A stretch of DNA of 64,000 nucleotides, taken from sequence record NC_049849.1, one strand, 5' to 3'. The notes under the pieces are model-generated. The model was not told the DNA's origin and made no database searches. It was given only the letters and a program-made list of their open reading frames with translations. A program made the translations under genes and the position numbers. This document shows, in pieces, positions 8,975 to 53,691 of this stretch. The stretch's first letter is position 1, and each line of letters opens with the position of its first letter.

Positions 8975-10645
8975 TTACCCTTTGTTCTGTTGCGCGGTGT
9001 GCTCCGCCTTCGTGAGCTCCGCGAGGTCCCATTTCTTTTCGAGCTTGGTAACGTACCAGCTTGGGATAGTCTCTTTAATACCAGACTCCGGTACGTTGAC
9101 ATAGGACTTGTTGTGCGGTATGTAAACCAGCCAGGCACCGCCAGTGCCGTGACCAACAATCAAACCAATGCCCTCAGTGGTCATGTAGAATTTGCCGATG
9201 AGTGTCGGCGATTTCTTCTCTGCTTGCGCACCCGGTTCTTTCTCTAGCTCTTGGCGTCTGGACAGTGCTTTAAGGAAGTAGGAATGGAACTCGTGCTTCT
9301 TGCTGTAGGGCAGCGCATGTTCGACTTCTTTGCGATTGACTTTGTCCCCAAGCACTAGATATGAGACAACCTCTGGATGCTTCCAATCAGGATGCCAAGC
9401 CTTCATGTTGTCGCCGCCTGCCAGGTCTGTGACAATCAGCGGACCGTAGGTGGAGTTGAATGTCCTGGCGACTAGATCGAAACCATACGCTGGCTTCGGC
9501 CCGATGCTCGGCAGCTTACCGCCCTTTTTGAAGACGTTATCCCACGGCTTATTAGGTATGATTTCGCTTTCCGGTTTCTTCTGTGCATTGCTATGCGCCA
9601 TCTGCATGAAGGTTTCGTACTTGGTCATGTCGGACGCCGGCACCGCAGCCTTGAAGGCACCTAGATAGACTTGCATTTGCAGTGACTTGTAGCCAGTCTT
9701 CTTTGGAACATTCCACCCAGGCTGCCATACACGTACGAGGGAAGGCTCATCAATGCCGATGACCAGCAGTGGACCGAACTGCGAATTGAAAGCCTTGCCC
9801 AGCAACTCGGGTCCGAACTTGGGCTTATATACCGTATCCTTGAGCTTGCTGCCAGGACCCCAGTTGAAGTTCTGTGTGGTCGGCACTCCGGGCAGGCCTT
9901 TGCTTGGCTTGCCAGGCTCGAAAATCGTTTTCGCGTTCTTGTCCAGTATGGGATTGCGGATCACCGTGGTCTTAATCGACTCGTTGCCGGGAATGAATAC
10001 GATGAACTCGCGCTCATCCGTATAGTCATCCAGCTGCTTGTGAGCACGACCCCACATGAAAGCAGCAGAGCGATAGAATGTTGCGAACTTGGGGTCACCG
10101 CCTTCCTTGTGCGCGGCATCCAGCGCCACGAACATTTTGAATAGCCGATCAGTGATGATCTTAATCGACGCGTGGTCTGCAAGAACCAATCGACGGTCAG
10201 GCTTCCATGAAACGGTCAGCTTGTCATACGCTTGAAACTTTTTGAGAGCCACATCAGAGAACGATAGGATCGGACTGAACGTGTTTTTCTTATTCAGCTC
10301 CAGCGTACCGCCAACCGGAATCTGCTCGTCTTCTTTGTTGACCTTGGTGCTACGATACAGCAGCTTGGGGACCTTCGGCTTAGCCAGCACCTGCAAGTGA
10401 GCCATGGCGACCGCAATGGCATCAACCTTGTCATAAGTGCGGGCTTCAAGGGCAGCGCTGTGCAGACGTTCGCTTTTGTTCTGCATCATGAAGTCGCCGC
10501 TGAACCAACCAGTGACCAGCGTCGGCAGCTTGTGCGCCAGGAACTCCCGCTCATCAGCGCCAAGCTTCGAGTAGAAGGCCCACGTCTTCTTTACATCAGG
10601 CGTAGGCTTCAGCGCTAACAGTCTATAAGCTGCTTGGATTTCCAT
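8975..10645 (-). CDS. Putative ADP-ribosyltransferase (R-S-E class) with leader and C-terminal repeated beta modules, 556 aa
   Basis: LLYRST / PILSFSD / DEREFIVF follows the R, SxS, ExE order; N-terminus MEIQAAYRLLA. Confidence 0.6.
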   Translation of the reverse strand: MEIQAAYRLLALKPTPDVKKTWAFYSKLGADEREFLAHKLPTLVTGWFSGDFMMQNKSERLHSAALEARTYDKVDAIAVAMAHLQVLAKPKVPKLLYRSTKVNKEDEQIPVGGTLELNKKNTFSPILSFSDVALKKFQAYDKLTVSWKPDRRLVLADHASIKIITDRLFKMFVALDAAHKEGGDPKFATFYRSAAFMWGRAHKQLDDYTDEREFIVFIPGNESIKTTVIRNPILDKNAKTIFEPGKPSKGLPGVPTTQNFNWGPGSKLKDTVYKPKFGPELLGKAFNSQFGPLLVIGIDEPSLVRVWQPGWNVPKKTGYKSLQMQVYLGAFKAAVPASDMTKYETFMQMAHSNAQKKPESEIIPNKPWDNVFKKGGKLPSIGPKPAYGFDLVARTFNSTYGPLIVTDLAGGDNMKAWHPDWKHPEVVSYLVLGDKVNRKEVEHALPYSKKHEFHSYFLKALSRRQELEKEPGAQAEKKSPTLIGKFYMTTEGIGLIVGHGTGGAWLVYIPHNKSYVNVPESGIKETIPSWYVTKLEKKWDLAELTKAEHTAQQNKG

Positions 10646-10654
10646 GTCTAGTCC

Positions 10655-10996
10655 TTACTTCTTCGATTTGTAGCGCTGATCCTCTGGAACCTTCGACCAC
10701 ATCTTCTGCTGCTTCACAGCCTCAGCCTTCATTTCTCTGTAAATAGACTTCAAGTTGTTCGGCACAGCCTTATCAACTTTTTCTTCGTACAGCAAAATCC
10801 CCAGGTCAGCGAACTTGACGTAGCCCCAACCTGTTTGCCAAGTCGGGTTGAAGACGCCGGCGATCTTACGGTCAGCGTCGACCATGACGACCAACACCGG
10901 ACCTTCCTTACTGTCACGGTAGGTATTGGGTTCGGGCGTTGCGGCGGGTGCGCGCCTCGGAGCCGCCGCAAGGCGAGCGCGTGCTTGAATTTCCAT
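10655..10996 (-). CDS. Leader-bearing small protein; stand-alone copy of the beta module repeated in the 556-aa protein
   Basis: MEIQARARLAA; YRDSKEGPVLVV...VFNPTW resembles FNSQFGPLLVI...VWQPGW. Confidence 0.65.
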   Translation of the reverse strand: MEIQARARLAAAPRRAPAATPEPNTYRDSKEGPVLVVMVDADRKIAGVFNPTWQTGWGYVKFADLGILLYEEKVDKAVPNNLKSIYREMKAEAVKQQKMWSKVPEDQRYKSKK

Positions 10997-11005
10997 GTTT
11001 ATTCC

Positions 11006-12142
11006 TTAGTGAAATTTGTACTTCTTACCGCCTGGGCCCCCGGTCTTGGTGTTGCTCTTAGAGCCCCACTTGTAACTCGGCTTAGACTTAGCCGGACCGC
11101 CGCCTTTGTAACTCGTCTTCTTTTTGAAGCTAGGCGGCTGCATCCATTCGTCAGACTCGTCGTTGCCGCCGTCGAAGTCGAAGGGCTTATAGCCTTTCGG
11201 CAAGCCTTTCTTGAACACCTTGTACACCGGCATCTTCTCGAACTTGAGTCTATTCTCTTTGCTCAAGTCCTCCATGAAGTAGTCAGCCGATTCGTCGGTA
11301 CCCATAACGTTTTTAACGTCAGTAACAACGGTCTTCATTTGATTGGTCAAGACTTCGACCTTGGGGCCGACTTTGGTGATCACGACATTGCCGTACTTCG
11401 GCCAGTAGCGAACAGCGCCAATGTTCAAAGCGAACGGATTGCGAATTACCTTGACCGTCAAACTTTCGTTGCCCGGGATGAACACGATGAACTCGCGTTC
11501 CTTCTCGAAGTGTTCGATTTCGCTCAGCGCATCTTCCCATTCATCAGAAGCCTGACTGTAGAAGTTGATGTAAGGGTCGGAGTCATCTGACTCGCGGTCG
11601 TCGTGAGCGTGCATCAAGTCGTCAAACATATTCTTGAACATCGAACATATTTGAACCATCCAATGGAAGTCACCCAACACCAAACGCGGGTCTACCTTCC
11701 ACTCAATAGTCAAGTTATCCGACTCTTCAAACATCGTAGGCTTCTCGTCAGCAAACGACAGGATCGGACTGCGAGTCGTCTTGGCATTGAGTTCCAACGT
11801 GCCGCCGACAGGAGTGAGCATCTGCTCTTTGTTCACATGCGTGGCACGGTACAGAACCTTCGGGACTTTGAACGGAAAGGCTTGCTTGATGTGTCCAAGC
11901 GCGACCGCGATGGCATCAACCTTGTGATACTTCTTGGCAGTCAAATGCGAAGTCAAGCGTTGCGTCTTATTCTGCTTTGTGAACGAACCGCGGAACCATT
12001 GCGCAAGCAACGGCGGCAGTTCGAGAGCAAGGAAGCTGCGCTCCTTCGGGCCAAGCTTCGAGTAGAACGCCCAAGCCTTTTTGCTGCTTGAGGGCGGCTT
12101 CAATGCCTCAAGCCGAGTGGCTGCTTGAATTTCGTAGGTCAT
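11006..12142 (-). CDS. Putative ADP-ribosyltransferase paralogue 2, 378 aa
   Basis: MTYEIQAATRLEA; VLYRAT / PILSFAD / EKEREFIVFIPGNES; clearly aligns with 8975..10645. Confidence 0.6.
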   Translation of the reverse strand: MTYEIQAATRLEALKPPSSSKKAWAFYSKLGPKERSFLALELPPLLAQWFRGSFTKQNKTQRLTSHLTAKKYHKVDAIAVALGHIKQAFPFKVPKVLYRATHVNKEQMLTPVGGTLELNAKTTRSPILSFADEKPTMFEESDNLTIEWKVDPRLVLGDFHWMVQICSMFKNMFDDLMHAHDDRESDDSDPYINFYSQASDEWEDALSEIEHFEKEREFIVFIPGNESLTVKVIRNPFALNIGAVRYWPKYGNVVITKVGPKVEVLTNQMKTVVTDVKNVMGTDESADYFMEDLSKENRLKFEKMPVYKVFKKGLPKGYKPFDFDGGNDESDEWMQPPSFKKKTSYKGGGPAKSKPSYKWGSKSNTKTGGPGGKKYKFH

Positions 12143-12143
12143 A

Positions 12144-12908
12144 TTATTTGCTCTTGTACGCTTTGGGTTTTGGCTTCTTCTTTTCCAGGTTACGGTTCAG
12201 CAGCACGGTGCACGCCAGTCCCTCGTTACCCGGAACCCACACGATGTATTCGCTTTCAGCCCTGTATTCTTTCATGGTCTGGTACAGCCGAGTCCACTCT
12301 TTCAAGCCCGCTGCATACTCCTTCTTCAGCTGCGGCGTTAACTTATCAGCCGGAGTATTCACTAGCAATGATCTGAGCATCTTGGCAGTAGACTCGGCGA
12401 ACATAAGAAGGTAACGCGGAGTCGACAGGACCAAACGCTGGTCCGTTTTCCATTCGAGGTCCAAAGTACTGTGGCCTCGAAAGTTAGGCTGAACCTTGCT
12501 AGAGAACGAGAGGATCGGAGTCAACGTCGATTTCAAATCCAGCGTTACCGTATCACCTACCGGAGTCTTCTGCTGCTCTTTGTTGATGCCAGTAACGCGA
12601 TACAGCTTGGCCGGAGCTTTAACGGGAAAGACCTGCTTGATGTGAGCAAGCGCCACAGCAATCGCGTCGACCTTGTGATACGAACGAGCTTCAATCGAAG
12701 ACTCCAGGCGTTCGCTCTTTCGATTCTTGCCTTGGTGCATGAACGACCCACCGAACCAGCCTTCAAGCAACTTCGGCAATTCAACGCGAAAGAATTTGCG
12801 CTCTGCCGTCCCAAGCTTTTTGTAGAACAGGGCGAATACTGTCTTGGGCGAAATGTCGTTAGCGGTTAATGCTTCAAGCCGCGTGGCTGATAGGACTTCG
12901 TATGTCAT
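12144..12908 (-). CDS. Putative ADP-ribosyltransferase paralogue 3, 254 aa
   Basis: MTYEVLSATRLEA; KLYRVT / PILSFSS / RAESEYIVWVPGNE; KVDAIAVA is shared by all three paralogues. Confidence 0.6.
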   Translation of the reverse strand: MTYEVLSATRLEALTANDISPKTVFALFYKKLGTAERKFFRVELPKLLEGWFGGSFMHQGKNRKSERLESSIEARSYHKVDAIAVALAHIKQVFPVKAPAKLYRVTGINKEQQKTPVGDTVTLDLKSTLTPILSFSSKVQPNFRGHSTLDLEWKTDQRLVLSTPRYLLMFAESTAKMLRSLLVNTPADKLTPQLKKEYAAGLKEWTRLYQTMKEYRAESEYIVWVPGNEGLACTVLLNRNLEKKKPKPKAYKSK

Positions 12909-13453
12909 GAGTACTGCCCTTCGTTCATTTGGATATCGCCTTGCGGAGTCGGCTGAACTCCATCAATGGTCATGACTCCCGTGTCCACTGTGACGTTTCC
13001 CAGGGTGTCAGGAGATTGACCGTTGACCGACAGGACCGGATTGGTCGACGGTGGCACAACAGGGCGGTCAAGAGAGTCGCCGAGTGCTTGGTGAACAAAG
13101 AGCTTCACCGGCACAGTCGAGACATTTTTGACAATGAAATTGGTAGTCAGCTCATCCAACACCAGCAGGTTCTTGACGTAAATCGTGACCTGCGTGTCAT
13201 CCAGTTTCCGCGTGTACTCAACAGAGATAGGACCATCGCAGCGAACGATCAGCATGTTGGAACTGGCGCCAGTCCATACTTGATTGGGTGCGAGTTCGAA
13301 GATCGAATTTTGAATCGAGGTCTCGCTCAGATAGGCTTGCGAGTAGTCACCCACACGCTGGCGAATCTGATTGTAGCCTTGCTGCACACCTACGCTTACC
13401 ACCAGAGAGTTCCTGGGCTTTTTAGCCGGGGTGATTGAAACTTCGTAATCCAT
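12905..13453 (-). CDS. Probable virion/fibre-associated protein, 182 aa (start MDYEVS)
   Basis: VLSVNGQSPDTLGNVTV repeats typical of fibre proteins; C-terminal NEGQYS resembles the DxGTY/F ends of other fibre genes here. Confidence 0.6.
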   Translation of the reverse strand: MDYEVSITPAKKPRNSLVVSVGVQQGYNQIRQRVGDYSQAYLSETSIQNSIFELAPNQVWTGASSNMLIVRCDGPISVEYTRKLDDTQVTIYVKNLLVLDELTTNFIVKNVSTVPVKLFVHQALGDSLDRPVVPPSTNPVLSVNGQSPDTLGNVTVDTGVMTIDGVQPTPQGDIQMNEGQYS

Positions 13454-13454
13454 T

Positions 13455-14582
13455 TTATTTCTCCAGTGCCACGATATAGTCGGTGAGCTTTTCTTTGTAG
13501 CGCACGAGCTTTGCCAGTTCGGTCGACAGCGACTCGGCGCCAGGACCTTCACCAAATTCTTTCAGCTTCGACTGCACTGCCGTAATCTGATTGTCGATAG
13601 AGGACAGCGCAATGTAGGCTCGGTCGAGTTCGGGGTCACCCGTTTCTTCCGGCTCTTCCTGATCGTTGTCGTCAAACTCTAGCTGCAGGTTCGACGGGTC
13701 TTGACCAAGGTTGATGATATCCTCGGCTGCATCTTTCATGTAGCCCATGAACTTCTGCATCTTGATTTCGTCACGCTGCCGTTGCGCTTCACGGTCTTGC
13801 TTCTCTTGTTCAGCCCGAGCTTTCCGATTCTCCGCCGCCTTATCTTTGGCGTCTTGTATCATCTGCGCGTCGTCTTCTTCAGTAGAGAGCGACTCAGGCT
13901 CATCGCCGTCCTCGTCAGGGATAATCTCGTCGTTGCCTTCGTCGGGTCCGTTCTCGTTATCGTCAGCAGTGCCTGGTCTGAACTTCGACTCGGGATGCTC
14001 GGCCAGCCACTGCTTTTGTTGCGACGAGTCCCACGATTTAAAATCCTGTTCAGAGATAGCGCGAATGGCTGTAGCTTGCAGTCGAGTCGATGCGAAGATT
14101 TCCATCATCAGCTCTTGCTGCGACGGCAGAGTGATATCTTCCAAGCGCTCTAGCGTTTTCGGATCAATGGTTTCAGGAATGCCCTCGAACGATTGCGGGT
14201 GGCCGTTCTTGTCCACCATATCGCCGCCGGCATCATCACCAGCTTCGATTCCAAAGTCATCAGCTTGTTCAGCGTTCGGCACATCAGTACCAGTGAAGGC
14301 CGACGACGCTTTGATGAACGCAGCAGCTTCGGTAATGGAAGCTTTCAGCTTTGCGTCGTCGATGCACTTACTGCAAATTTTGGAGCCACCACAGCGGGAG
14401 CGCTCGCCGTTAGCATTTGCAAATACATGACCGTGCCCAGCGCCCATAGCGGCACGTCCATCTGAAGTCTGTGGTACTCCGTCGAACATGGCGGGGTATT
14501 TTGTTTTGAGCATTGCATCAAATTCCTCTTGGGTTTCACCACGGCGCTCTAGTAGGCGCTGCATTCGTTGGTCTATATCCAT
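13455..14582 (-). CDS. Acidic hypothetical protein, 375 aa (start MDIDQR), with GHGH..RCGG..C..C motif and internal leader MEIFASTRLQA
   Basis: The ATG at 14582 abuts the stop of the upstream gene at 14584. Confidence 0.65.
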   Translation of the reverse strand: MDIDQRMQRLLERRGETQEEFDAMLKTKYPAMFDGVPQTSDGRAAMGAGHGHVFANANGERSRCGGSKICSKCIDDAKLKASITEAAAFIKASSAFTGTDVPNAEQADDFGIEAGDDAGGDMVDKNGHPQSFEGIPETIDPKTLERLEDITLPSQQELMMEIFASTRLQATAIRAISEQDFKSWDSSQQKQWLAEHPESKFRPGTADDNENGPDEGNDEIIPDEDGDEPESLSTEEDDAQMIQDAKDKAAENRKARAEQEKQDREAQRQRDEIKMQKFMGYMKDAAEDIINLGQDPSNLQLEFDDNDQEEPEETGDPELDRAYIALSSIDNQITAVQSKLKEFGEGPGAESLSTELAKLVRYKEKLTDYIVALEK

Positions 14583-14583
14583 A

Positions 14584-14844
14584 CTAGCCCGGATTTCCCA
14601 CAGTGTAGAAGTAAACCTTGTCAGGCGTGCTAGGCATCGTAACGCACCAGCACGTCTCGGAGTCTTGCTCAACGATTGCGCCTTCAGCTTCGAGTGCCGT
14701 GATAGCGCGCTCTACATCATCCGGGTCGTTGTCGATAGCCAAGCCCTGCGAGCTGACTTCGGCGGCGAGGCCTGCGGCGTTCAGTATGTCGTGTACCTCG
14801 TTGACTGCTGAGGCTTTCAGTCTTGCACGGGCTTGGATTCTCAT
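14584..14844 (-). CDS. Leader-bearing small protein, 86 aa
   Basis: MRIQARARLKA; tiles exactly with neighbours. Confidence 0.7.
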   Translation of the reverse strand: MRIQARARLKASAVNEVHDILNAAGLAAEVSSQGLAIDNDPDDVERAITALEAEGAIVEQDSETCWCVTMPSTPDKVYFYTVGNPG

Positions 14845-15123
14845 TTACGTCACCTTGTATGCGATAGAGAAGTCGTGACCGTCTTTGCCTTTGCTGATGT
14901 ACTGGACTTCGATGCCATTGCGCTTCAGCATTTCGAAGTAGCGGAAATGAATCGTGCCATCAACAAAGAAGAAGCCCTCGTTGATTTTTGCATCGGGGCT
15001 GTCTTTCATTTTCTTGTGAAAGGCCGGAGGGATCGAAACGTTCGGCATCAAGTGCAGGTCTTCGATCACTTCGGAGATAGGACGCGCTGCAGCAGTCAGC
15101 CGTGCCTTTGCTTGGATGTGCAT
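14845..15123 (-). CDS. Leader-bearing small protein, 92 aa
   Basis: MHIQAKARLTA; TAATG coupling with the upstream gene. Confidence 0.7.
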   Translation of the reverse strand: MHIQAKARLTAAARPISEVIEDLHLMPNVSIPPAFHKKMKDSPDAKINEGFFFVDGTIHFRYFEMLKRNGIEVQYISKGKDGHDFSIAYKVT

Positions 15124-15749
15124 TACTTCTTCCTGTTAAACGGATTGATCGACATGACGACCGGCACGCGCCACTCAGGGCCCCACGGCTTGGTGTCCGA
15201 GTACCACTTCAGCTGGTCACGGTCCCAGTAGTTCCACGCCTTCCAGCCCAGCTTATACGTGCCGTACTTGCCTTGGTAGTTGATGTTCCACAAACCATTG
15301 GTAGCGGTAGCGATGAACAGCTGATGCTTACCATCAAACGGCTGCCAGGTTTGGATCGTCCACTTCTTCTGATCCATCACTTCGCCAAGCGGGTAGTAGG
15401 AGAAGCCGTAACCAGAGTTGCGATTCAGCCAACGCCACTGGTAGTATTTGCGACGCCAGAAGCTCGGCAGATTGTCTTTGCTGTATGTGCCCTTCGGTAC
15501 GAAGTAGCCGCCAATCCAACCAGTGTCTAGCGACGCATCAAACGTCTCTACCCACTTGAGCCAGTTCGGCAGGCGCTGTTCCAATCCTTGCCATTCAGGC
15601 TTGGCTTGCGAGTACATCCACTCCTCGGGCTTGACCGGACGTGCGACAAACACGACCCACCAGTTGAGAAACAGAACGCAGAAAAGGTTGAAGACCAAAT
15701 CAACCAGACCCAACGCCAACCACTTCAAAGTTTGCACTACATACTTCAT
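15123..15749 (-). CDS. Trp-rich protein with N-terminal hydrophobic segment, 208 aa
   Basis: LALGLVDLVFNLFCVLFLNWWVVFV is a likely transmembrane helix; WRWLNRNSGYGF; AGGAG RBS. Confidence 0.7.
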   Translation of the reverse strand: MKYVVQTLKWLALGLVDLVFNLFCVLFLNWWVVFVARPVKPEEWMYSQAKPEWQGLEQRLPNWLKWVETFDASLDTGWIGGYFVPKGTYSKDNLPSFWRRKYYQWRWLNRNSGYGFSYYPLGEVMDQKKWTIQTWQPFDGKHQLFIATATNGLWNINYQGKYGTYKLGWKAWNYWDRDQLKWYSDTKPWGPEWRVPVVMSINPFNRKK

Positions 15750-15759
15750 TGACTAACTC

Positions 15760-16005
15760 CTATTTGAAAAGACGCTCTGCCTTACGCAGCAGATGCGACG
15801 CCATCTTGATGTTGCCTTGCTTCAACCAACGCTCGACCTCTTCAGCGATATCCAACATATCCCGCTCTTCGGATTTCACCAAGTCGCGAATCAGTCTCGG
15901 CATACGACCTAAGGCATCAGCATCACCCTTCAGTGCTTGCTGGAACAGAATGGAAGGCCCGTTGAAGGCCTCTAGCCTTGACGCTGCTCTTATTTGAAAC
16001 CCCAT
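15760..16005 (-). CDS. Leader-bearing small protein, 81 aa
   Basis: MGFQIRAASRLEA. Confidence 0.7.
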   Translation of the reverse strand: MGFQIRAASRLEAFNGPSILFQQALKGDADALGRMPRLIRDLVKSEERDMLDIAEEVERWLKQGNIKMASHLLRKAERLFK

Positions 16006-16218: not shown

Positions 16219-17775
16219 TTATAGTGGGCCTGCGCAAGCACCCCAGTTGTAGCTGGCGGGTGCATAGCGTCCCCACACAGAAGCTGGGCTGATAGTGATA
16301 CCAACAGCACCAGTTGCCCCTCTTGCCACGCCGGCTCCACCCGACCCGCCGCCAGAACCATCACCGCCAGTGTTGCCACGGATAATTAGGTTTTGCTTGA
16401 ACGGCTTCAGCTCGTTGTCCAACCGCGATTGAATCTTGGACGCAGCGCTGTCGAGGTACTGAGTACGATCCACGTTCAGGCTAATGGCTTGGCCTTGGAA
16501 GTCGAATGCCTTCTCACCTTCGGCGAGATACTGCGCTTCGATTGCAAACAGCTCGGCCAACATCAACCAGTACTCGCGAATGCCACCCAGTGCATTGGTC
16601 ATGGTGAAGTTCGTAGAAACGCCCATCCAACCATTGAACGCATCAGCCGCACGTCGCAACCAAGTCATGATTGTGGTCGGTGGGAACAACAGGTCAGGCG
16701 CTCCGTAGAGAGTCGTACGCGCCTTGTTGATCTTTGCCTTCACATCGTCAATCGCATTGGCTAGCGATGCGTTGATAACGAATAGATCGGTGCGTTCAGT
16801 GTAGACGCGTGCCGAATACTTCGATTGCCAGAACTTCCACACCACCGAGTACGGATAGACCGCAGCCGGCAGGTTGTCGGTGACCAGCACGCCTGCATAA
16901 TACCAACCAGACGCGACCTTGATAGGAGCATCGGTAGCAGGCTGCGACGTATCCGAAATCATCGTCAGCGGAACCAGCTGCTGATTCTGCCTAAACAGTT
17001 GGATGCCTACTCGGTCATACATCTGGTCAGTGACGAGCTCCAGCGTTGCAGGATCGCCCTGCATTTCGACTTGCGGTTGCACACCAATGGGCACGGTAAC
17101 GAGACCGACCACGGTGATGGCTTCGCCTTGAAATTCACGCACGGTCGAGCCATCAGGCTGCCGACGTTGAATGGTCCAACGCAGTTGATACTTCTGGTTC
17201 TCAATCGTAGGCGGAATGTCCGACGGTACAACGATGACGGCACGCGCCAGTACGTTGTTAGAGAAGCCGTTGACCTCTACGCGATATTCAAAAGCATTGC
17301 CTGCAGCGTAGACCGTACCATCCTCGGCCAACAGCTCATACAGAACGAAGCCGCCAGAGGGGTCGATATCAACTGGGTACGAGAACACGCACGTACCGAT
17401 GACCGAGTCGCCGGCCTGTACCGTATCGACCAAGTCCTTAAATGCGTCAGGGCTCTGCGTCGAATACGGAACCAGTTCGCCGGATTGCGTATTGCAGGTC
17501 ACGGCTAGCAACGCTCCGAACTTGCGGAGGTTGGTGGTGACCACAACATCAATGCCGTACGAGATACCGGGGCTGCCGCCAGTCATGCGGACTTCGATGG
17601 TGACGCCATCAATGCCGAGATACGTAGCATTAAGTGGGGTGGTGGTGACTGGAGTCGGGGCACCCAGTTCAACCAAAGTGATCGTTTCGCCTGGTTGAAG
17701 CAGTGACCCCAACTGCGCTTGCACTACAGTGTCGCTGTTAGTGTCTTTGTAGTAGACGAAAGTTGTTGATGCCAT
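16219..17775 (-). CDS. Virion structural protein, possibly head-tail adaptor/neck, 518 aa
   Basis: Long ORF with beta-rich N-terminal part and helical C-terminal part (EKAFDFQGQAISLNVDRTQYL); function inferred from context. Confidence 0.5.
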   Translation of the reverse strand: MASTTFVYYKDTNSDTVVQAQLGSLLQPGETITLVELGAPTPVTTTPLNATYLGIDGVTIEVRMTGGSPGISYGIDVVVTTNLRKFGALLAVTCNTQSGELVPYSTQSPDAFKDLVDTVQAGDSVIGTCVFSYPVDIDPSGGFVLYELLAEDGTVYAAGNAFEYRVEVNGFSNNVLARAVIVVPSDIPPTIENQKYQLRWTIQRRQPDGSTVREFQGEAITVVGLVTVPIGVQPQVEMQGDPATLELVTDQMYDRVGIQLFRQNQQLVPLTMISDTSQPATDAPIKVASGWYYAGVLVTDNLPAAVYPYSVVWKFWQSKYSARVYTERTDLFVINASLANAIDDVKAKINKARTTLYGAPDLLFPPTTIMTWLRRAADAFNGWMGVSTNFTMTNALGGIREYWLMLAELFAIEAQYLAEGEKAFDFQGQAISLNVDRTQYLDSAASKIQSRLDNELKPFKQNLIIRGNTGGDGSGGGSGGAGVARGATGAVGITISPASVWGRYAPASYNWGACAGPL

Positions 17776-18501
17776 TTATCCTACCGCCACAATGTCTAGG
17801 AATCCCCTGCGGTCTACGTTCATAGAGAAGCGTTCGCCGCTCGGTAGTTGAGATATCATGACCAAGTCGGTGCCGTGCTTCACGACTTGCGAGGGCTTCT
17901 TGGTCAAGAACTGTACGCCGAGTTTGCCAAGCTCAACCAGGAAGGTCAAGGCCGACACATCGGTAGAGAAGTGAATCATGTCCAACCCATCAGCTTGCTC
18001 GACCGAGATTTTACCCTTGGCCAAACGGTTAGCGGCTTTCATGATCGCAGTTTTCGGATCGGCTGCGGCGGTGACCCGCGCTTCCATGTCAGCACCGTTA
18101 GCGAGTTCATCAGCTACAGCGCCATCGGCCGAACCTTCAATGGTTTCATCTTCGACTTCGGAGACGACACCGGGAAACATGGATTCAATGACGAAGGCCA
18201 TCGACTTCCCACCATCGGTCTCCAGCTCATCGGAAGTCACGACCGAAGGGTCTTCTGAACTCGTGACTGCTTGGTACATTGCATCGACTGCGGATGCTTG
18301 GGTGATCGCGTAGGCTTTCACTTTATCTCGTCCTTTCAATGATTCAGCTTCGTCTTCACCGTCACGTTCAAATTCTGCATCGGTGAGTTCTTGCTGAAGT
18401 TCATTTGCGTACTCGGTGTCTCCAGTACGCTTGGCATCACGAATCTGATTCTTGAGGTCACGGATTCGCTTGTCCAATTCTTTCGAGCTATGAATACGCA
18501 C
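17776..18501 (-). CDS. Acidic hypothetical protein, 241 aa
   Basis: Tiles in the operon, with GGAG upstream. Confidence 0.65.
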   Translation of the reverse strand: MRIHSSKELDKRIRDLKNQIRDAKRTGDTEYANELQQELTDAEFERDGEDEAESLKGRDKVKAYAITQASAVDAMYQAVTSSEDPSVVTSDELETDGGKSMAFVIESMFPGVVSEVEDETIEGSADGAVADELANGADMEARVTAAADPKTAIMKAANRLAKGKISVEQADGLDMIHFSTDVSALTFLVELGKLGVQFLTKKPSQVVKHGTDLVMISQLPSGERFSMNVDRRGFLDIVAVG

Positions 18502-18817
18502 TTTTCGATTTCTCCTTTATGCCGGTATCGACGATTTCGATCTGCGCCATACCTGGAGCAATATCGAACACCTTTACCGTACCATGAGGGAACTGTGCTT
18601 CGTACCGGCGCTTGTCTTTCAGGTGTACGAACTTCGCCTTAGACATTTCCTTAACCAGTACGTCTGCACTCTTGTTAGCGGAGTACAAAAGCGTATGCCC
18701 CAGGCCGTAAGTGACCTGGGGTGTTATGTTGGACTTCAGCCCTAGCTCTTGCAAGAACTTTCGTCCGGCCGCTTTGTCGCTCACTGCATGAAGCCGGAGT
18801 GCGGCGAGGATTTGCAT
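18488..18817 (-). CDS. Leader-bearing small protein, 109 aa (start MQILAALRLHA)
   Basis: GGAG-TTAACA-ATG at 18817; leader motif. Confidence 0.7.
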   Translation of the reverse strand: MQILAALRLHAVSDKAAGRKFLQELGLKSNITPQVTYGLGHTLLYSANKSADVLVKEMSKAKFVHLKDKRRYEAQFPHGTVKVFDIAPGMAQIEIVDTGIKEKSKSAYS

Positions 18818-18819
18818 TG

Positions 18820-19056
18820 TTAACTCCAACGTTTAGCGTGGTTCTTCCAGCGCTCCAGCTCTTCGGGGTCGGGATTGTTGCGCCCGGCCGCACTGTTGCG
18901 CCAACCGTGGTACCACTCCTCGGCGTCGAACGAATTAGCCGGATAGGGGCAGTCATTACGCGCTGCACCGTTGTCACCATCGGCTTGACCTTTACGAAAC
19001 GCCGGTGTGATATCGCCCATCGAAGCTTGCAGTCTCACGGCAGCTTTGATTTGCAT
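18820..19056 (-). CDS. Leader-bearing ribosome modulation factor (Rmf/CrpP)-like protein, 78 aa
   Basis: MQIKAAVRLQA then AFRKGQADGDNGAARNDCPYPANSFDAEEWYHGWR, matching the RMF pattern G..AG..G.....CPY.......W..GW. Confidence 0.6.
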   Translation of the reverse strand: MQIKAAVRLQASMGDITPAFRKGQADGDNGAARNDCPYPANSFDAEEWYHGWRNSAAGRNNPDPEELERWKNHAKRWS

Positions 19057-19580
19057 TACTGCTCCTTTGCAACGACGCGGGCTTTAGGAGCCAGCACTTC
19101 GTAGATGTAACTCGTATTGTTGTAGCGATGCACCGACAGATTCAACTCTTTAGCCTGAGCGGCATCAATCGGCTTACCCGTGTAGTACCAGAGTATGACC
19201 TTTTCGATCTGCGGCAGCGTCACGTTCTTTGGTTTGCGTTTGATCTTGCCAGCCTTGTAGCAGCCGTCACGCTCTAGCACATCCATCAAAACGTTCAGCC
19301 AACTGGAGTGGCCTGCTGCTGATTTGCCAACAGGTTCCATGCGGTACACGTTGTCGCCGTACGGTGCAGAGTCTTTCGGATTCCGTGACAAGAAAATGCA
19401 CTTCATGCGAGAGACTCCGATGCCAAGCTGCGCACGAGCCCACTCGAAGACTTGCTCTACCACACCCATGCGTTGATTCGACGGCTTGGCAGTAATGACC
19501 TTACCGATCGGCAAGTCCGCAGTCGTTCCATGGTAGAGCGGCTGCGATGCTTGCAATCTCACGGCAGCTTGAATTTCCAT
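19056..19580 (-). CDS. Leader-bearing H-type ADP-ribosyltransferase-fold protein (Arr-like), 174 aa
   Basis: MEIQAAVRLQA; LYHGT, IFLSRNP...YGDNVYRMEP, C-terminal IYEVL. Confidence 0.6.
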   Translation of the reverse strand: MEIQAAVRLQASQPLYHGTTADLPIGKVITAKPSNQRMGVVEQVFEWARAQLGIGVSRMKCIFLSRNPKDSAPYGDNVYRMEPVGKSAAGHSSWLNVLMDVLERDGCYKAGKIKRKPKNVTLPQIEKVILWYYTGKPIDAAQAKELNLSVHRYNNTSYIYEVLAPKARVVAKEQ

Positions 19581-19584
19581 TTTG

Positions 19585-19827
19585 TTAGCCTTCAATAGCT
19601 TTGATGAGAGGCAGCAGTTCTTTCAACTTGGCTTGAACGATCTTGGTCAGCTTTTTCTTCGACGCGCTTTCCAGTGCCGAAGCTGCTGCATCCAGTTGGC
19701 GCTCAACATCAGCACCACGTTGGCGCAACAGTGCAGGAATGTTGCCAATGTCGCCAGTCTTGATAGCATCGGCAATCGCATTAGCTGCCACACCTGCTTG
19801 AAGTCTTGCCTGTGCTTGGATTTGCAT
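19585..19827 (-). CDS. Leader-bearing small helical protein, 80 aa
   Basis: MQIQAQARLQA, preceded by GAGGA RBS. Confidence 0.7.
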   Translation of the reverse strand: MQIQAQARLQAGVAANAIADAIKTGDIGNIPALLRQRGADVERQLDAAASALESASKKKLTKIVQAKLKELLPLIKAIEG

Positions 19828-19835
19828 TTCAGTCC

Positions 19836-20219
19836 TCACTTAACGTTCATGACTCGGAAGATGATGCGCACGTTGTCGCCGTCCGGTACCACGACCATGC
19901 GCGTAGTCCACGAAGGAGCATCCTTGTTAGAGAGCGCCTTGTTCCACGAAACATAGGCCTTAGCTTTCGGGCCTTGTGCAATCGGCGGGTCATACTTGGA
20001 CTTGTGCGCAAAGTCGAACTGGAATTTGCGGACCAGCTTCTTCACAGCCTCCTTCGCTTCTGCGGGACTAACCGTAGCAGAGTACGTAGCAGCGCTGCCG
20101 CCTACGCCGTGATCACCAACGAGGTCGAGGCCGGATACTTCTTTGAGCAGTGGAGCGACTTGGTAGAGCGCACGGCTGTTAGCTGTGACTCGAAGTCTTG
20201 CGCGTGCTTGGATTAGCAT
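19836..20219 (-). CDS. Leader-bearing protein, 127 aa
   Basis: MLIQARARLRV, preceded by GAGGA RBS. Confidence 0.7.
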   Translation of the reverse strand: MLIQARARLRVTANSRALYQVAPLLKEVSGLDLVGDHGVGGSAATYSATVSPAEAKEAVKKLVRKFQFDFAHKSKYDPPIAQGPKAKAYVSWNKALSNKDAPSWTTRMVVVPDGDNVRIIFRVMNVK

Positions 20220-20227
20220 TTCAGTCC

Positions 20228-20656
20228 TCACTTGATGCAAGAGGCAACGAACTTGTCGATACCGTCGCGCATGGTCCTGGATTTGAACTTGACGCGGGCA
20301 GCTTCCTTCTGCACTTGCTTGCCAACCGTGCCCAACATAGCAGCGTGTGCCTTTTTGAGGTCGACCGGAATGACCACGTCTTGATTGCCCATGTCGAAAC
20401 GAATACGCAGAAGGCCGCTCGAATCGAACTCGTCAATGACTTCAATCTTGCCACGACTGTTATCCGATTCTTCTTGCGAGAGCCACCACAAATACATGGG
20501 TTCGCCGTTAGCCGTGCGCTTCACCTGAGCCGTGATTCCGAAGGCAAAGGATATACGCGAAGTGACTGCGGCGATTAGTTTGGCAACCGGAGAGGGGCGT
20601 TTGGCAGGCACTCCGGCAGCCGTGAGATTAAGCCGTGCTGCTGCTTGAATAATCAT
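20228..20656 (-). CDS. Leader-bearing protein, 142 aa
   Basis: MIIQAAARLNL. Confidence 0.7.
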   Translation of the reverse strand: MIIQAAARLNLTAAGVPAKRPSPVAKLIAAVTSRISFAFGITAQVKRTANGEPMYLWWLSQEESDNSRGKIEVIDEFDSSGLLRIRFDMGNQDVVIPVDLKKAHAAMLGTVGKQVQKEAARVKFKSRTMRDGIDKFVASCIK

Positions 20657-20665
20657 TTCATTCCT

Positions 20666-21187
20666 TTAGAGGTCTAGTTGCATAACGGGTTTCATGGTCG
20701 TAGCCGAACTACAAATAGCGATGACTTCTTTCTGATCGCCGTAGTCTAAAACCTCTTGAAAGTTTCGAGCGCGAGAGTCTTCGATCTTGGCGGACTTCAA
20801 GTACTGCATGATTTTCTTTGCCCACTCAAAAGTGAAGACTTGTTTGAAGTTGTCCACTTGATACACTGTGCCATTCAGCTGACCAATGCTGTCACCTAAG
20901 AACTCCCACTCTTCTGGTTTGTTCAGCGTAGTGAACGAAGCTACTCTGCGCACATCGAGCTTCGTACGCTCCGATATCCAATAGTAGGGACCACGCACGG
21001 GTACGAAAGGAACTGCGTCTACAAGGGGCCGTAGATGCTTCACCACAAACTGAGGAGTCAGATACTTAGAGTGCACACTGGACGACTGAGCCACGTAAGA
21101 ATTAAGCCAGTCAACAGCATCCAATACTGCCTCATTAGAAGCATCAGTGCTGGCAGCGCGTAGACGCAACGCTGCTTGAATAATCAT
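20666..21187 (-). CDS. Leader-bearing protein, 173 aa, possibly a degenerate ART fold
   Basis: MIIQAALRLRA; VASFTT and GDQKEVIAI resemble the SxT and QxE motifs, but the R is missing (PYYW). Confidence 0.6.
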   Translation of the reverse strand: MIIQAALRLRAASTDASNEAVLDAVDWLNSYVAQSSSVHSKYLTPQFVVKHLRPLVDAVPFVPVRGPYYWISERTKLDVRRVASFTTLNKPEEWEFLGDSIGQLNGTVYQVDNFKQVFTFEWAKKIMQYLKSAKIEDSRARNFQEVLDYGDQKEVIAICSSATTMKPVMQLDL

Positions 21188-22488
21188 TTGACTTTCCCTT
21201 GCATGATTAGCGCGATCTTGCGCAATTGGTTGTCGGTGAGCTTGAACTTGTCGCGCATGAACTCAATGTCGTACAGGTTCAACGTGATGCCGCCTGCAGT
21301 CGAATCCAGAGAGAACGAAATGACATACTGCTCGCCGGCCTTCTCAATCTTGGCGCGCATCTTCGCGTTCTTCTTCGACTGCAGCATTTCCTTGATTTCT
21401 TGATTCAGCTGCGCAGCCATCTTGATTGCCGACTCTTTGTTGACGCCAGCATTCTTGCGAGTCTTGAAGACCAGACCGGTATCAGAGACGGTGACCGAAT
21501 CAAGATAGTCACGGTAGCTGAAGTCGGAGCGCTTGATGGCCGACGGATCAACCTTGAGCTGCAACGCCAGAGGAATCACACCCAAAGAACTCGAGAAGTT
21601 TTCGAGGTCGAGTAGATTGGCAATGGCCTTCACGGCTTGCTGCACATTCGTGACTTCGATTCCCGAACCAGAGTTCTGGAGTTGCTCAGGCAGTTCGAAG
21701 TCGTGCGTCAGATAGACCTTGACCGAAGCATCCTCATCGGCACTGCCCATCACCCACTGCACAGTGATGTACAGAGTCTTGGCGACTTCGCCATCAGCAT
21801 TCATCGCTTCCTGAATCATCAGGTAGTTGGTGAACGTGATAGAGCCTTTCGGCGAGACGTTGATGTAGAGGAAGCTGTGTGCATCCGAATGAACAACGTG
21901 CTCACTGACTTCGGCAGCCAGAGCATCAACGTATTGCTTGAACTGCTTGGGCACATGCGCGCTGGCCACTTCGTTCAGGAACGAGAAGGCAGTCTGCATC
22001 TGCTGTTGAATCGCTTGCTTGATGAACGCGATTTCGTTCCTGGCCTTTTCAGTCTGCGACGAGTCAGCGAACTGCATACCCATTTGGGTTTCAATCGACT
22101 CGAGCGCTTGCCACTTCTGATGCAAGTCCGCGAGAATCGAGTACTGATCCTTCAGCTTCTTGAGGTTCGGCACGATTACCTTCTCGGCATTCGGGTCGAT
22201 CTTGCGCTTCAGGTTCTGCAGTTTCTTTTTGTCCGAGCCACCGGGGCTGGAAATCTTGAAGGTCTCCAATGCTGCCGACAACGGGCGATCCGTCTTGGCC
22301 TTCTGATCCAGAGTAGCCAGCACGGTCTTGGTCGACAACGCTTTGATAGTGAACTCGGTGGGTCGCGCCAGCTTGGCCAAGAGCTTGACTTGCTGATTCA
22401 GCACTTGGTTGGACTCGCGCAGGTCCGACTTCATCTTTTGAAGATACTTGATAACGTCTTCAACGTATCGAAACTTGGGTAGTTCCAT
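21184..22488 (-). CDS. Probable virion structural protein, 434 aa
   Basis: Long ORF with AAGGA RBS; N-terminal coiled coil. Confidence 0.65.
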   Translation of the reverse strand: MELPKFRYVEDVIKYLQKMKSDLRESNQVLNQQVKLLAKLARPTEFTIKALSTKTVLATLDQKAKTDRPLSAALETFKISSPGGSDKKKLQNLKRKIDPNAEKVIVPNLKKLKDQYSILADLHQKWQALESIETQMGMQFADSSQTEKARNEIAFIKQAIQQQMQTAFSFLNEVASAHVPKQFKQYVDALAAEVSEHVVHSDAHSFLYINVSPKGSITFTNYLMIQEAMNADGEVAKTLYITVQWVMGSADEDASVKVYLTHDFELPEQLQNSGSGIEVTNVQQAVKAIANLLDLENFSSSLGVIPLALQLKVDPSAIKRSDFSYRDYLDSVTVSDTGLVFKTRKNAGVNKESAIKMAAQLNQEIKEMLQSKKNAKMRAKIEKAGEQYVISFSLDSTAGGITLNLYDIEFMRDKFKLTDNQLRKIALIMQGKVK

Positions 22489-53346: not shown

Positions 53347-53691
53347 TTAGGTTCGATCCTGTTTAGGAAGCTCGCGACCGTATGCGCGATAGAGCGCTTC
53401 CTTTACGTGTTGATACTTCGCCTTCTCGTTGCGGTCCTGGTTCTTGCCAGACCGGTTAGTGAAGTACGATAGTTTGGAAATGGCTTGTTTGAATTCGGGG
53501 CACTTGGTCTTGAGTGTATTTACGATTTCCCCTACGCCTTTGGTGAACAGACCTTCCGGCAAGTCTTGTGCTGGATTGCGAGCTTTGCCTTCTTCCTTCT
53601 TTTCGGCATTGTCGATCCAGCGCTTAGGTGGCGGCTTGTTCTGGCGAGTAGGAAGCGCAGCACTCAAGCGCTGTGCAGCTAGGATTTTCAT
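53347..53691 (-). CDS. Leader-bearing DUF3175-like protein, 114 aa
   Basis: MKILAAQRLSA; DLPEGLFT...AISKLSYFTNRSGKN...KEALYRAYGR resembles DUF3175 (from memory). Confidence 0.65.
   Translation of the reverse strand: MKILAAQRLSAALPTRQNKPPPKRWIDNAEKKEEGKARNPAQDLPEGLFTKGVGEIVNTLKTKCPEFKQAISKLSYFTNRSGKNQDRNEKAKYQHVKEALYRAYGRELPKQDRT

Follow-up and report, generated by a model that had tools for sequence, protein, structure and literature searches.

A divergent Rmf/CrpP-fold protein fused to a shared leader peptide within the structural operon of Achromobacter phage Motura

We analysed a stretch of 64,000 nucleotides from sequence record NC_049849.1 (the window), which corresponds to positions 124001-188000 of the 221,431-bp genome of Achromobacter phage Motura (MN094788 / NC_049849; window bases 17000-22000 are 100% identical to it). 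The host of the phage is Achromobacter animicus, and Achromobacter is a betaproteobacterial genus. Our subject is a gene of 78 codons on the minus strand, for which a preliminary description, made from the letters of the window, had proposed a leader-tagged, virion-delivered mimic of the ribosome modulation factor (RMF) that might shut off or redirect host translation. The gene encodes a 12-residue leader (MQIKAAVRLQAS), an RMF-like stretch and a 24-residue C-terminal extension. Its parts are listed below; here and in what follows, positions are those of the window unless genome or record positions are named.

18820..19056, minus strand: whole open reading frame (ORF), 78 codons plus stop (GenBank QDH83625, 'hypothetical protein').
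19062..19067, minus strand: Shine-Dalgarno sequence AAGGAG, 5 nucleotides 5' of the ATG (sequence inspection).
19021..19056, minus strand: leader, residues 1-12, MQIKAAVRLQAS (common to 16 other Motura ORFs; AlphaFold2 confidence ~49).
18895..19008, minus strand: Rmf/CrpP-fold core, residues 17-54 (Pfam RMF, AlphaFold2, top fold match).
18823..18894, minus strand: C-terminal extension, residues 55-78, with helices 56-60 and 64-77 predicted at lower confidence (AlphaFold2, MAFFT).

The ORF is a real gene, tightly packed in an operon, because it combines coding potential, a Shine-Dalgarno sequence and translational coupling. Its in-frame codon-usage score is +0.38 bits/codon, similar to that of the neighbouring genes, compared with -0.56 and -0.32 bits/codon for the two overlapping ORFs. 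The ATG overlaps the stop codon of the upstream gene, which is also leader-tagged (TAATG), the next gene begins 2 nucleotides past the stop codon, and the last codons of the RMF-like ORF hold the Shine-Dalgarno sequence of that next gene. The translationally coupled gene lies on the same strand as the head, connector and tail genes, inside a long minus-strand block that extends from ~154.5 kb down to ~112 kb of the record. In descending record coordinates this block contains tail fibres, small genes, the head-tail connector (match to PHROG 17327, E 9e-73), further small genes together with a 1528-residue helicase, the head maturation protease, the major head protein, and then sheath and tube.

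Every family search of the protein led to RMF, although at modest scores. The profile search against Pfam RMF (PF04957), which the preliminary description had proposed as a check, matched residues 17-54 with E=1.7e-5 and 25.2 bits, below the gathering score of 27.9, and the three NCBIfam RMF/CrpP models (E 4e-5 to 3e-4) likewise remained below their cut-offs: 23.3 bits vs 40 for the RMF equivalog NF011162, 21.6 vs 28 for the Rmf/CrpP family NF041886, and 20.1 vs 40 for the phage Rmf/CrpP-fold model NF041887. PHROGs 13106 and 10492 matched weakly (E 2e-4 and 4e-3), the best three PDB sequence matches were the RMFs of E. coli and Vibrio (E 0.08-0.2), and the neighbours in the ESM Atlas were RMF clusters (cosine 0.87). 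A six-frame scan of the 221-kb genome gave this domain as the sole RMF-like match (genome 142895-143008; E=2.6e-6, 25.9 bits). In the HMMER alignment to 6h4n_v, the RMF spacing G-x3-G-x2-G-x5-CPY followed by W-x2-GW is kept, except that CPY and the first Trp are one residue further apart; the signature positions are G23, G27, G30, C36-P37-Y38, W48 and G51-W52. The RMF-like pattern first noticed by eye was thus recovered at RMF spacing plus one extra residue, and it coincides with a predicted RMF-type fold.

An AlphaFold2 model built from a 10-sequence alignment consists of a helix at residues 18-28, a loop that bears the CPYP motif and a second helix at residues 43-53, with a predicted local distance difference test (pLDDT) value above 90 over residues 20-50. 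The leader is modelled as unstructured or detached from the fold (pLDDT ~49, with the minimum at residues 11-13). When the model was compared with the PDB by Foldseek, the top three matches were RMF (E ~1), among them 9iot_y with a target-normalised template modelling score of 0.68 and a root-mean-square deviation of 2.5 Å over 45 columns, and VIA-align ranked the 70S-bound RMF 4v8g_AV first of 48,161 chains (with a weak Z of 3.9). The C-terminal extension is not present in canonical RMF. In a MAFFT alignment its NPDPEELERW...W segment is placed opposite the CPYP...E.W..GW found in the second repeat of the tandem relatives, and one may speculate that the extension is a vestigial half-repeat of a two-domain ancestor.

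A full HMMER pass over 1.84 billion representatives recovered nine real relatives (E 6e-8 to 9e-4), all nine of which match Pfam RMF, with scores that reach the cut-off in seven. Because the nearest relatives themselves match Pfam RMF, homology of the Motura domain at the level of the superfamily follows transitively. The second-best HMMER match (E 7e-15) was discarded as spurious, being a 1140-residue low-complexity tandem repeat that contains CPYPSNS. In several relatives two domains stand in tandem and show the variant CPYPxGS...E.W..GW; most of the relatives are acidic, and the nearest have the variant CPYPxxS...E.W..GW in common with the Motura protein. One relative is located in an ordinary bacterial chromosomal neighbourhood and another on a short contig of tiny genes; the leader is present in none of the nine. 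A word-based search of 5.8 billion clusters returned nothing beyond the protein itself, tblastn against plasmids gave zero matches, a single-protein search of viral contigs found zero relatives, and in tblastn against phages all RMF-like matches were insignificant (E at least 0.3). Among the weak phage matches, that in Brevundimonas phage Marchewka is a stand-alone gene of 45 residues and that in Rhizobium phage RHph_TM16 is a domain N-terminal in a 153-residue protein; both genes stand among small accessory genes and are without the leader. RMF-domain genes have been annotated previously in phages, e.g., in Agrobacterium phage Milano (PMC6588377).

We conclude that the domain is a divergent member of the Rmf/CrpP-fold superfamily and not an RMF equivalog or orthologue, because it scores below every curated cut-off; the individual statistics are modest for a domain of ~40 residues, yet all of them converge on the RMF family. 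The Motura protein resembles RMF (PF04957, NF011162; PDB 6H4N chain v, 4V8G, 2JRM) in its two-helix hairpin, Gly-x3-Gly-x2-Gly, CPY loop and W-x2-GW, and RMF is the top match in every sequence and fold comparison. It differs from RMF in being acidic rather than strongly basic, in the absence of the basic tail, of four of five 16S contacts and of Arg37, in the extra residue between loop and helix 2, and in the 12-residue leader and 24-residue C-terminal extension. The settings differ as well: the Motura gene is phage-borne, in a late structural operon, with a betaproteobacterial host, whereas RMF is a chromosomal, stationary-phase protein of Gammaproteobacteria. The caveat in the preliminary description that related Rmf/CrpP-fold proteins of unknown function exist holds: members of NF041886, NF041887 and PHROGs 13106/10492 are likewise small proteins of the RMF fold, encoded by phages and mobile elements, for which no function has been demonstrated. 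Unlike the Motura protein, which scores below the model cut-offs, these are stand-alone proteins of 45-65 residues or tandem-domain proteins in accessory or early-type clusters or in bacterial chromosomes, and none has the Motura leader or a location in a structural operon. To our knowledge, proteins of the RMF fold occur sporadically in phages, plasmids and integrative elements, and a function is known only for the RMF of Gammaproteobacteria; our literature search found no paper that ties CrpP, RMF and phage function together. What is new here is the fusion of the Rmf/CrpP fold to a lineage leader within a structural operon, a combination specific to Motura because the RMF-like genes of other phages lie in accessory clusters and are without the leader.

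The leader named in the preliminary description proved to be shared on the scale of the genome. Its consensus, MxIQAAxRLxA, heads 17 Motura ORFs: a regular-expression scan of six frames of the genome found 13 N-terminal motif sites vs ~2 elsewhere, the annotated N-termini add variants that start with Tyr or Phe after a short prefix, and a hidden Markov model (HMM) of 16 leaders recovered 17 Motura sites (E 8e-7 to 4e-4). Arg8 and Leu9 are invariant, and Ile3 and Ala5 are conserved in at least 90%. Selection has acted on the leader as a peptide and not as an RNA or DNA element, because the codons of Arg8 (AGA, AGG, CGC, CGG, CGA, CGT) and Leu9 (CTC, CTG, CTT, CTA, TTG) vary synonymously. The leaders of the RMF-like gene and its upstream neighbour are 86% identical in DNA (31 of 36 nucleotides), suggesting that the leader module was duplicated or converted recently. 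At the end of the leaders comes a near-invariant Leu-x-Ala, with Ser, Ala or Thr next (RLQA/S in the RMF-like protein), and downstream of them stand Pro/Gly/Ser-rich linkers (short Gly/Pro in the RMF-like protein) and then mutually unrelated sequences of 66 to 544 residues, mostly basic; 12 of the 17 tagged proteins are basic after removal of the leader (isoelectric point, pI, 9.2-9.9). In four leader-tagged genes the annotated or longest-ORF TTG/GTG starts lie 4-7 codons 5' of the leader ATG (18817/18829, 19580/19595, 19827/19839, 20219/20240). A separate Shine-Dalgarno sequence precedes this ATG, so translation probably begins at the leader Met, and several GenBank starts are probably mis-set.

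The tagged genes are concentrated around the connector gene: 15 of the 17 are located in two hypervariable zones that flank it within the long late structural operon. The tagged regions of the window are the following.

18488..21187, minus strand: seven consecutive leader-tagged genes, the RMF-like gene being second from the 3' end (N-termini, tblastn).
8975..15999, minus strand: second leader-tagged zone, on the far side of the connector gene (regular expression, HMM).
53347..53691, minus strand: isolated leader-tagged DUF3175 protein (Pfam E 2e-6; orthologue comparison).

The seven-gene array sits between two backbone genes, a homologue of BcepSaruman gp095 and the head-tail connector, and in the second zone the Met, Tyr or Phe of the leaders is at 10645, 10996, 12136, 12902, 14844, 15123 and 15999. 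Members of both zones have no tblastn counterpart in BcepSaruman or phiRSL1 although the flanking backbone genes have one, and the arrays are insertions into a conserved backbone. A promoter and terminator scan of the array gave site counts not above those of shuffled controls. Some tagged genes showed features of their own. The gene directly upstream of the RMF-like gene (19056-19580, minus strand) encodes a 174-residue protein whose mature part starts QPLYHGT.ADLPIG, weakly like the N-terminal motif of the rifampin ADP-ribosyltransferase Arr (Pfam Arr-ms E 0.19); this protein with its Arr-like LYHGT hint had no PDB sequence match. In the second zone, a leader-like sequence, MEIFASTRLQATA, occurs at 14105, internal to an annotated coding sequence of 375 residues (13455-14582, minus strand) and ~160 residues from its start, and the portion after the motif is very acidic (charge -29); the motif could reflect translation from an internal start codon, a gene fusion or processing within the protein. 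Not every tagged gene is head-proximal, because a leader-tagged Motura gene of 148 residues outside the window (genome 112891-113343, minus strand) directly follows the tail tube gene, and the leader-like gene gp077 of BcepSaruman stands between the sheath and tube genes.

As judged by the connector protein, the closest phages are BcepSaruman and BcepSauron (~50% identity), phiRSL1 (48%) and BCSR5 (47%). In Burkholderia phage BCSR5 (MW460245), seven ORFs start with MKI[EQM]AA[AST]RL[KQR]A, e.g., MKIEAAARLKA..., at 121678, 122058, 126152, 132830, 140220 and 196362 on the plus strand and at 216926 on the minus strand; five of the seven go on with ..LLA, and five of the seven lie within ~12 kb of the connector gene. 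BcepSaruman has about five looser copies, e.g., MKLEAAARLLATS, and phiRSL1 has one leader-like N-terminus, MKINSAFRLLVTS, on the MutT/NUDIX hydrolase ORF109 (positions 13670-14173 of the phiRSL1 locus), outside the structural block. Five more distant relatives lack the leader; Lu11, NCTB, Erwinia Y3 and Xanthomonas PhiXhv-12 gave zero matches at E up to 10. Of the tagged proteins, just the DUF3175 protein has orthologues in BcepSaruman, phiRSL1 and BCSR5, and the leader is kept in Saruman and BCSR5. Because the leader is found in BCSR5, BcepSaruman and phiRSL1 and is kept on DUF3175 orthologues, it is an old feature of the phiRSL1/BCSR5/Motura lineage that has been expanded in Motura.

The closest parallel to this arrangement is found in phage T4, in which a capsid-targeting sequence loads IPI, IPII, IPIII and Alt into the scaffolding core, the proteins are injected as anti-defence or takeover factors, and the internal-protein loci are diverse behind the conserved targeting sequence (PMC3012670). 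As in T4, a short conserved N-terminal peptide in Motura precedes unrelated, fast-evolving small proteins, some of them enzyme-like, in variable clusters. The Motura peptide differs in being unrelated in sequence and without the Glu cleavage motif, the 17 tagged ORFs form a larger repertoire, and Motura belongs to the phiRSL1/BCSR5/Saruman-like jumbo myoviruses. Because the conserved N-terminal peptide, flexible linker, unrelated fast-turnover cargo and morphogenetic operon parallel those of T4, we favour, at about even confidence, the reading that the leader-tagged RMF-fold protein is loaded into the head, injected, and acts as a small module on a low-copy target. The leader would attach the protein to some conserved part of the procapsid during assembly, the head maturation protease may then clip it after the near-invariant Leu-x-Ala, and the mature domain of ~66 residues would be stored with the DNA and later injected. 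In the cell, where at most hundreds of copies would arrive, it might bind or inhibit, as a small module, a target of low copy number, e.g., a host defence protein, or alternatively a factor that meets the incoming DNA or the first transcripts. Packaging, cleavage, injection and target are all drawn here by analogy.

With regard to the proposed cleavage, the Motura head protease had PHROG 18299 ('head maturation protease') as its only match, and no Pfam or PDB entry was matched by sequence. The prohead proteases of tailed phages are generally regarded as having the assemblin fold, and the maturation sites of herpesvirus assemblins follow the consensus (V/L/I)-x-Ala/Ser, which we take as a lead only; the Leu-x-Ala plus Ser/Ala/Thr at the end of the Motura leaders resembles this consensus. 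Two further proteins have conserved motifs of a comparable kind in Motura, Saruman and phiRSL1: the N-terminus of the major head protein (genome 120209-121294) contains P-V/M-x-A-A-S/T-E-F/Y at about residues 13-20, and that of the 542-residue gp186 (genome 122077-123705) contains V-x-A-A at about residues 17-21. Both motifs are possible sites of cleavage during maturation. Another candidate cleavage signal, A-x-x-R-[LM]-x-[AG] (in the leader, the major head protein and gp187), was rejected, being restricted to Motura and not conserved in Saruman or RSL1.

Several points weigh against the reading as a head-loaded module of the RMF fold. The leader has no Glu-type cleavage site like that of T4 or phiKZ, the candidate Leu-x-Ala cut site is a possible one that owes its nomination solely to resemblance, and the V-x-A-A motifs may be due to chance, as they are common in Ala-rich sequence. 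Within the searchable literature library, we found neither virion proteomics nor data on the processing of N-termini for Motura, BcepSauron/Saruman, BCSR5 or phiRSL1. The fold-search scores are weak in absolute terms (Foldseek E ~1, Z 3.9), which is expected because the domain has only ~40 residues. Finally, the aligned core is just mildly less basic than that of Vibrio RMF (-1.5 vs +0.8), and because the two charges are close the protein could still bind ribosomes in another mode.

The leader might instead be a late regulatory, degradation, localisation or modification tag, the RMF-fold protein then working in the producing cell late in infection. In its favour, packaging is proposed by analogy, the leader has no recognised protease site, the tagged gene at record 112891-113343 stands beside tail and not head genes, and the single leader-like N-terminus of phiRSL1 is carried by a NUDIX enzyme outside the structural block. 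However, 15 of the 17 tagged genes are within the head-connector-tail operon, the architecture of tag, linker and unrelated cargo in hypervariable arrays matches the T4 capsid-targeting precedent, and the conservation of the tag across phages of different host genera indicates a conserved phage-encoded receptor. We therefore regard a non-packaging tag as rather unlikely.

A functional RMF mimic, as originally envisaged, would bind the 30S platform and anti-Shine-Dalgarno region and shut off or redirect host translation, whether it arrives with the virion or is synthesised late. In favour of a mimic, the family, sequence and fold comparisons all give RMF as the best match, the framework (Gly-x3-Gly-x2-Gly, CPY, W-x2-GW, Arg45 and Arg51) is retained, and RMF from E. 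coli is able to bind to a heterologous ribosome (Beckert et al., bioRxiv 10.1101/382572). The conserved Gly, CPY and Trp residues are, however, expected to hold the hairpin and are evidence for the fold rather than for function, and the contacts of RMF with the ribosome have largely been lost. Arg3, Lys5, Arg8, Arg11 and Arg15 of RMF, all conserved, hydrogen-bond to the 16S rRNA backbone, and Arg37, Glu10 and Gln39 touch domain 4 of S1 (Beckert et al., bioRxiv 10.1101/382572). In the HMMER alignment just one of the five basic residues is retained (Arg15 as Lys22), Arg11 aligns to Pro18, and RMF residues 3-8 have no aligned counterpart; the S1-contact positions are all changed (Arg37 to Ala45, Glu10 to Thr17, Gln39 to Glu47). 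The basic N-terminal tail of RMF is replaced by the shared leader and a Gly/Asp/Pro linker, the leaderless protein has a pI of 5.5 and a net charge of -2.3, and the aligned core carries -1.5 vs +2.9 in E. coli RMF and +0.8 in Vibrio RMF. Also against a mimic are the failure to reach any curated cut-off and the nature of the closest relatives, which are acidic or tandem non-canonical proteins.

Stoichiometry and host add to these objections. RMF acts at one molecule per ribosome, and the number of ribosomes per cell is in the order of 10^4. We estimate that a phage head can deliver roughly 10^2-10^3 internal protein molecules, far fewer than there are ribosomes, so an injected stoichiometric silencer would be ineffective; T4 heads contain ~1000 internal protein molecules in total (PMC3012670). 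Masking of the anti-Shine-Dalgarno sequence would also hit the genes of the phage itself, because these have good Shine-Dalgarno sites on which they depend. The formation of 100S particles of the RMF/HPF type has been described for Gammaproteobacteria (bioRxiv 10.1101/382572), and the host of Motura is a betaproteobacterium. Because of the lost contact residues, the stoichiometry and the non-gammaproteobacterial host, silencing of the bulk ribosome pool or hibernation is unlikely, and we consider a functional RMF mimic of either kind improbable. Of the preliminary description, the fold and the tag therefore stand, and the shut-off of host translation is unsupported.

A narrower role at the ribosome could be reconciled with injection in few copies: if the phiRSL1/BCSR5/Motura lineage has a capsid-targeting leader of its own, the RMF-fold cargo might bind just those few ribosomes or 30S subunits that are the first to encounter phage mRNA, or else a defence or stress factor associated with the ribosome, and so bias the first rounds of translation. 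We hold this to be doubtful, with little probability in its favour; if true, the protein would be a virion-delivered, locally acting translation modulator rather than a bulk hibernation factor. Similarly slim are the prospects of a protein that is packaged but has no role after injection, i.e., a filler or scaffold-like internal protein that organises or pressurises the DNA in the large head. The basic character of 12 of the 17 tagged proteins without the leader (pI 9.2-9.9), as is usual for DNA-associated internal proteins, fits such a role, and the internal proteins of T4 are embedded in the DNA (PMC3012670), but the RMF-like protein itself is not basic (charge -2.3) and keeps a small, conserved and well-folded domain that also occurs in many settings outside phages, and an arms-race role fits better than a structural one because the array members are not conserved between relatives. 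That the RMF resemblance arose by chance in a short ORF, or that the ORF is not a gene at all, is scarcely credible: every family score is under its curated threshold and the fold-search statistics are individually insignificant, but independent methods converge on RMF, the relatives are Pfam-RMF positive, and the ORF has coding potential, a Shine-Dalgarno sequence, translational coupling and a leader common to 16 other genes.

Under the reading that we favour, a head-loading-like tag on an RMF fold predicts action at DNA entry and in few copies, and the Motura protein offers a concrete way into experiments on the Rmf/CrpP family as a whole. Of greater importance than this one cargo may be the tag, and the more valuable lead is the leader system in its entirety. 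If the tag is a capsid-targeting signal, it would label ~17 injected proteins in a little-studied lineage of jumbo phages, and it could be used as a protein-packaging tool, like the targeting sequence of T4.

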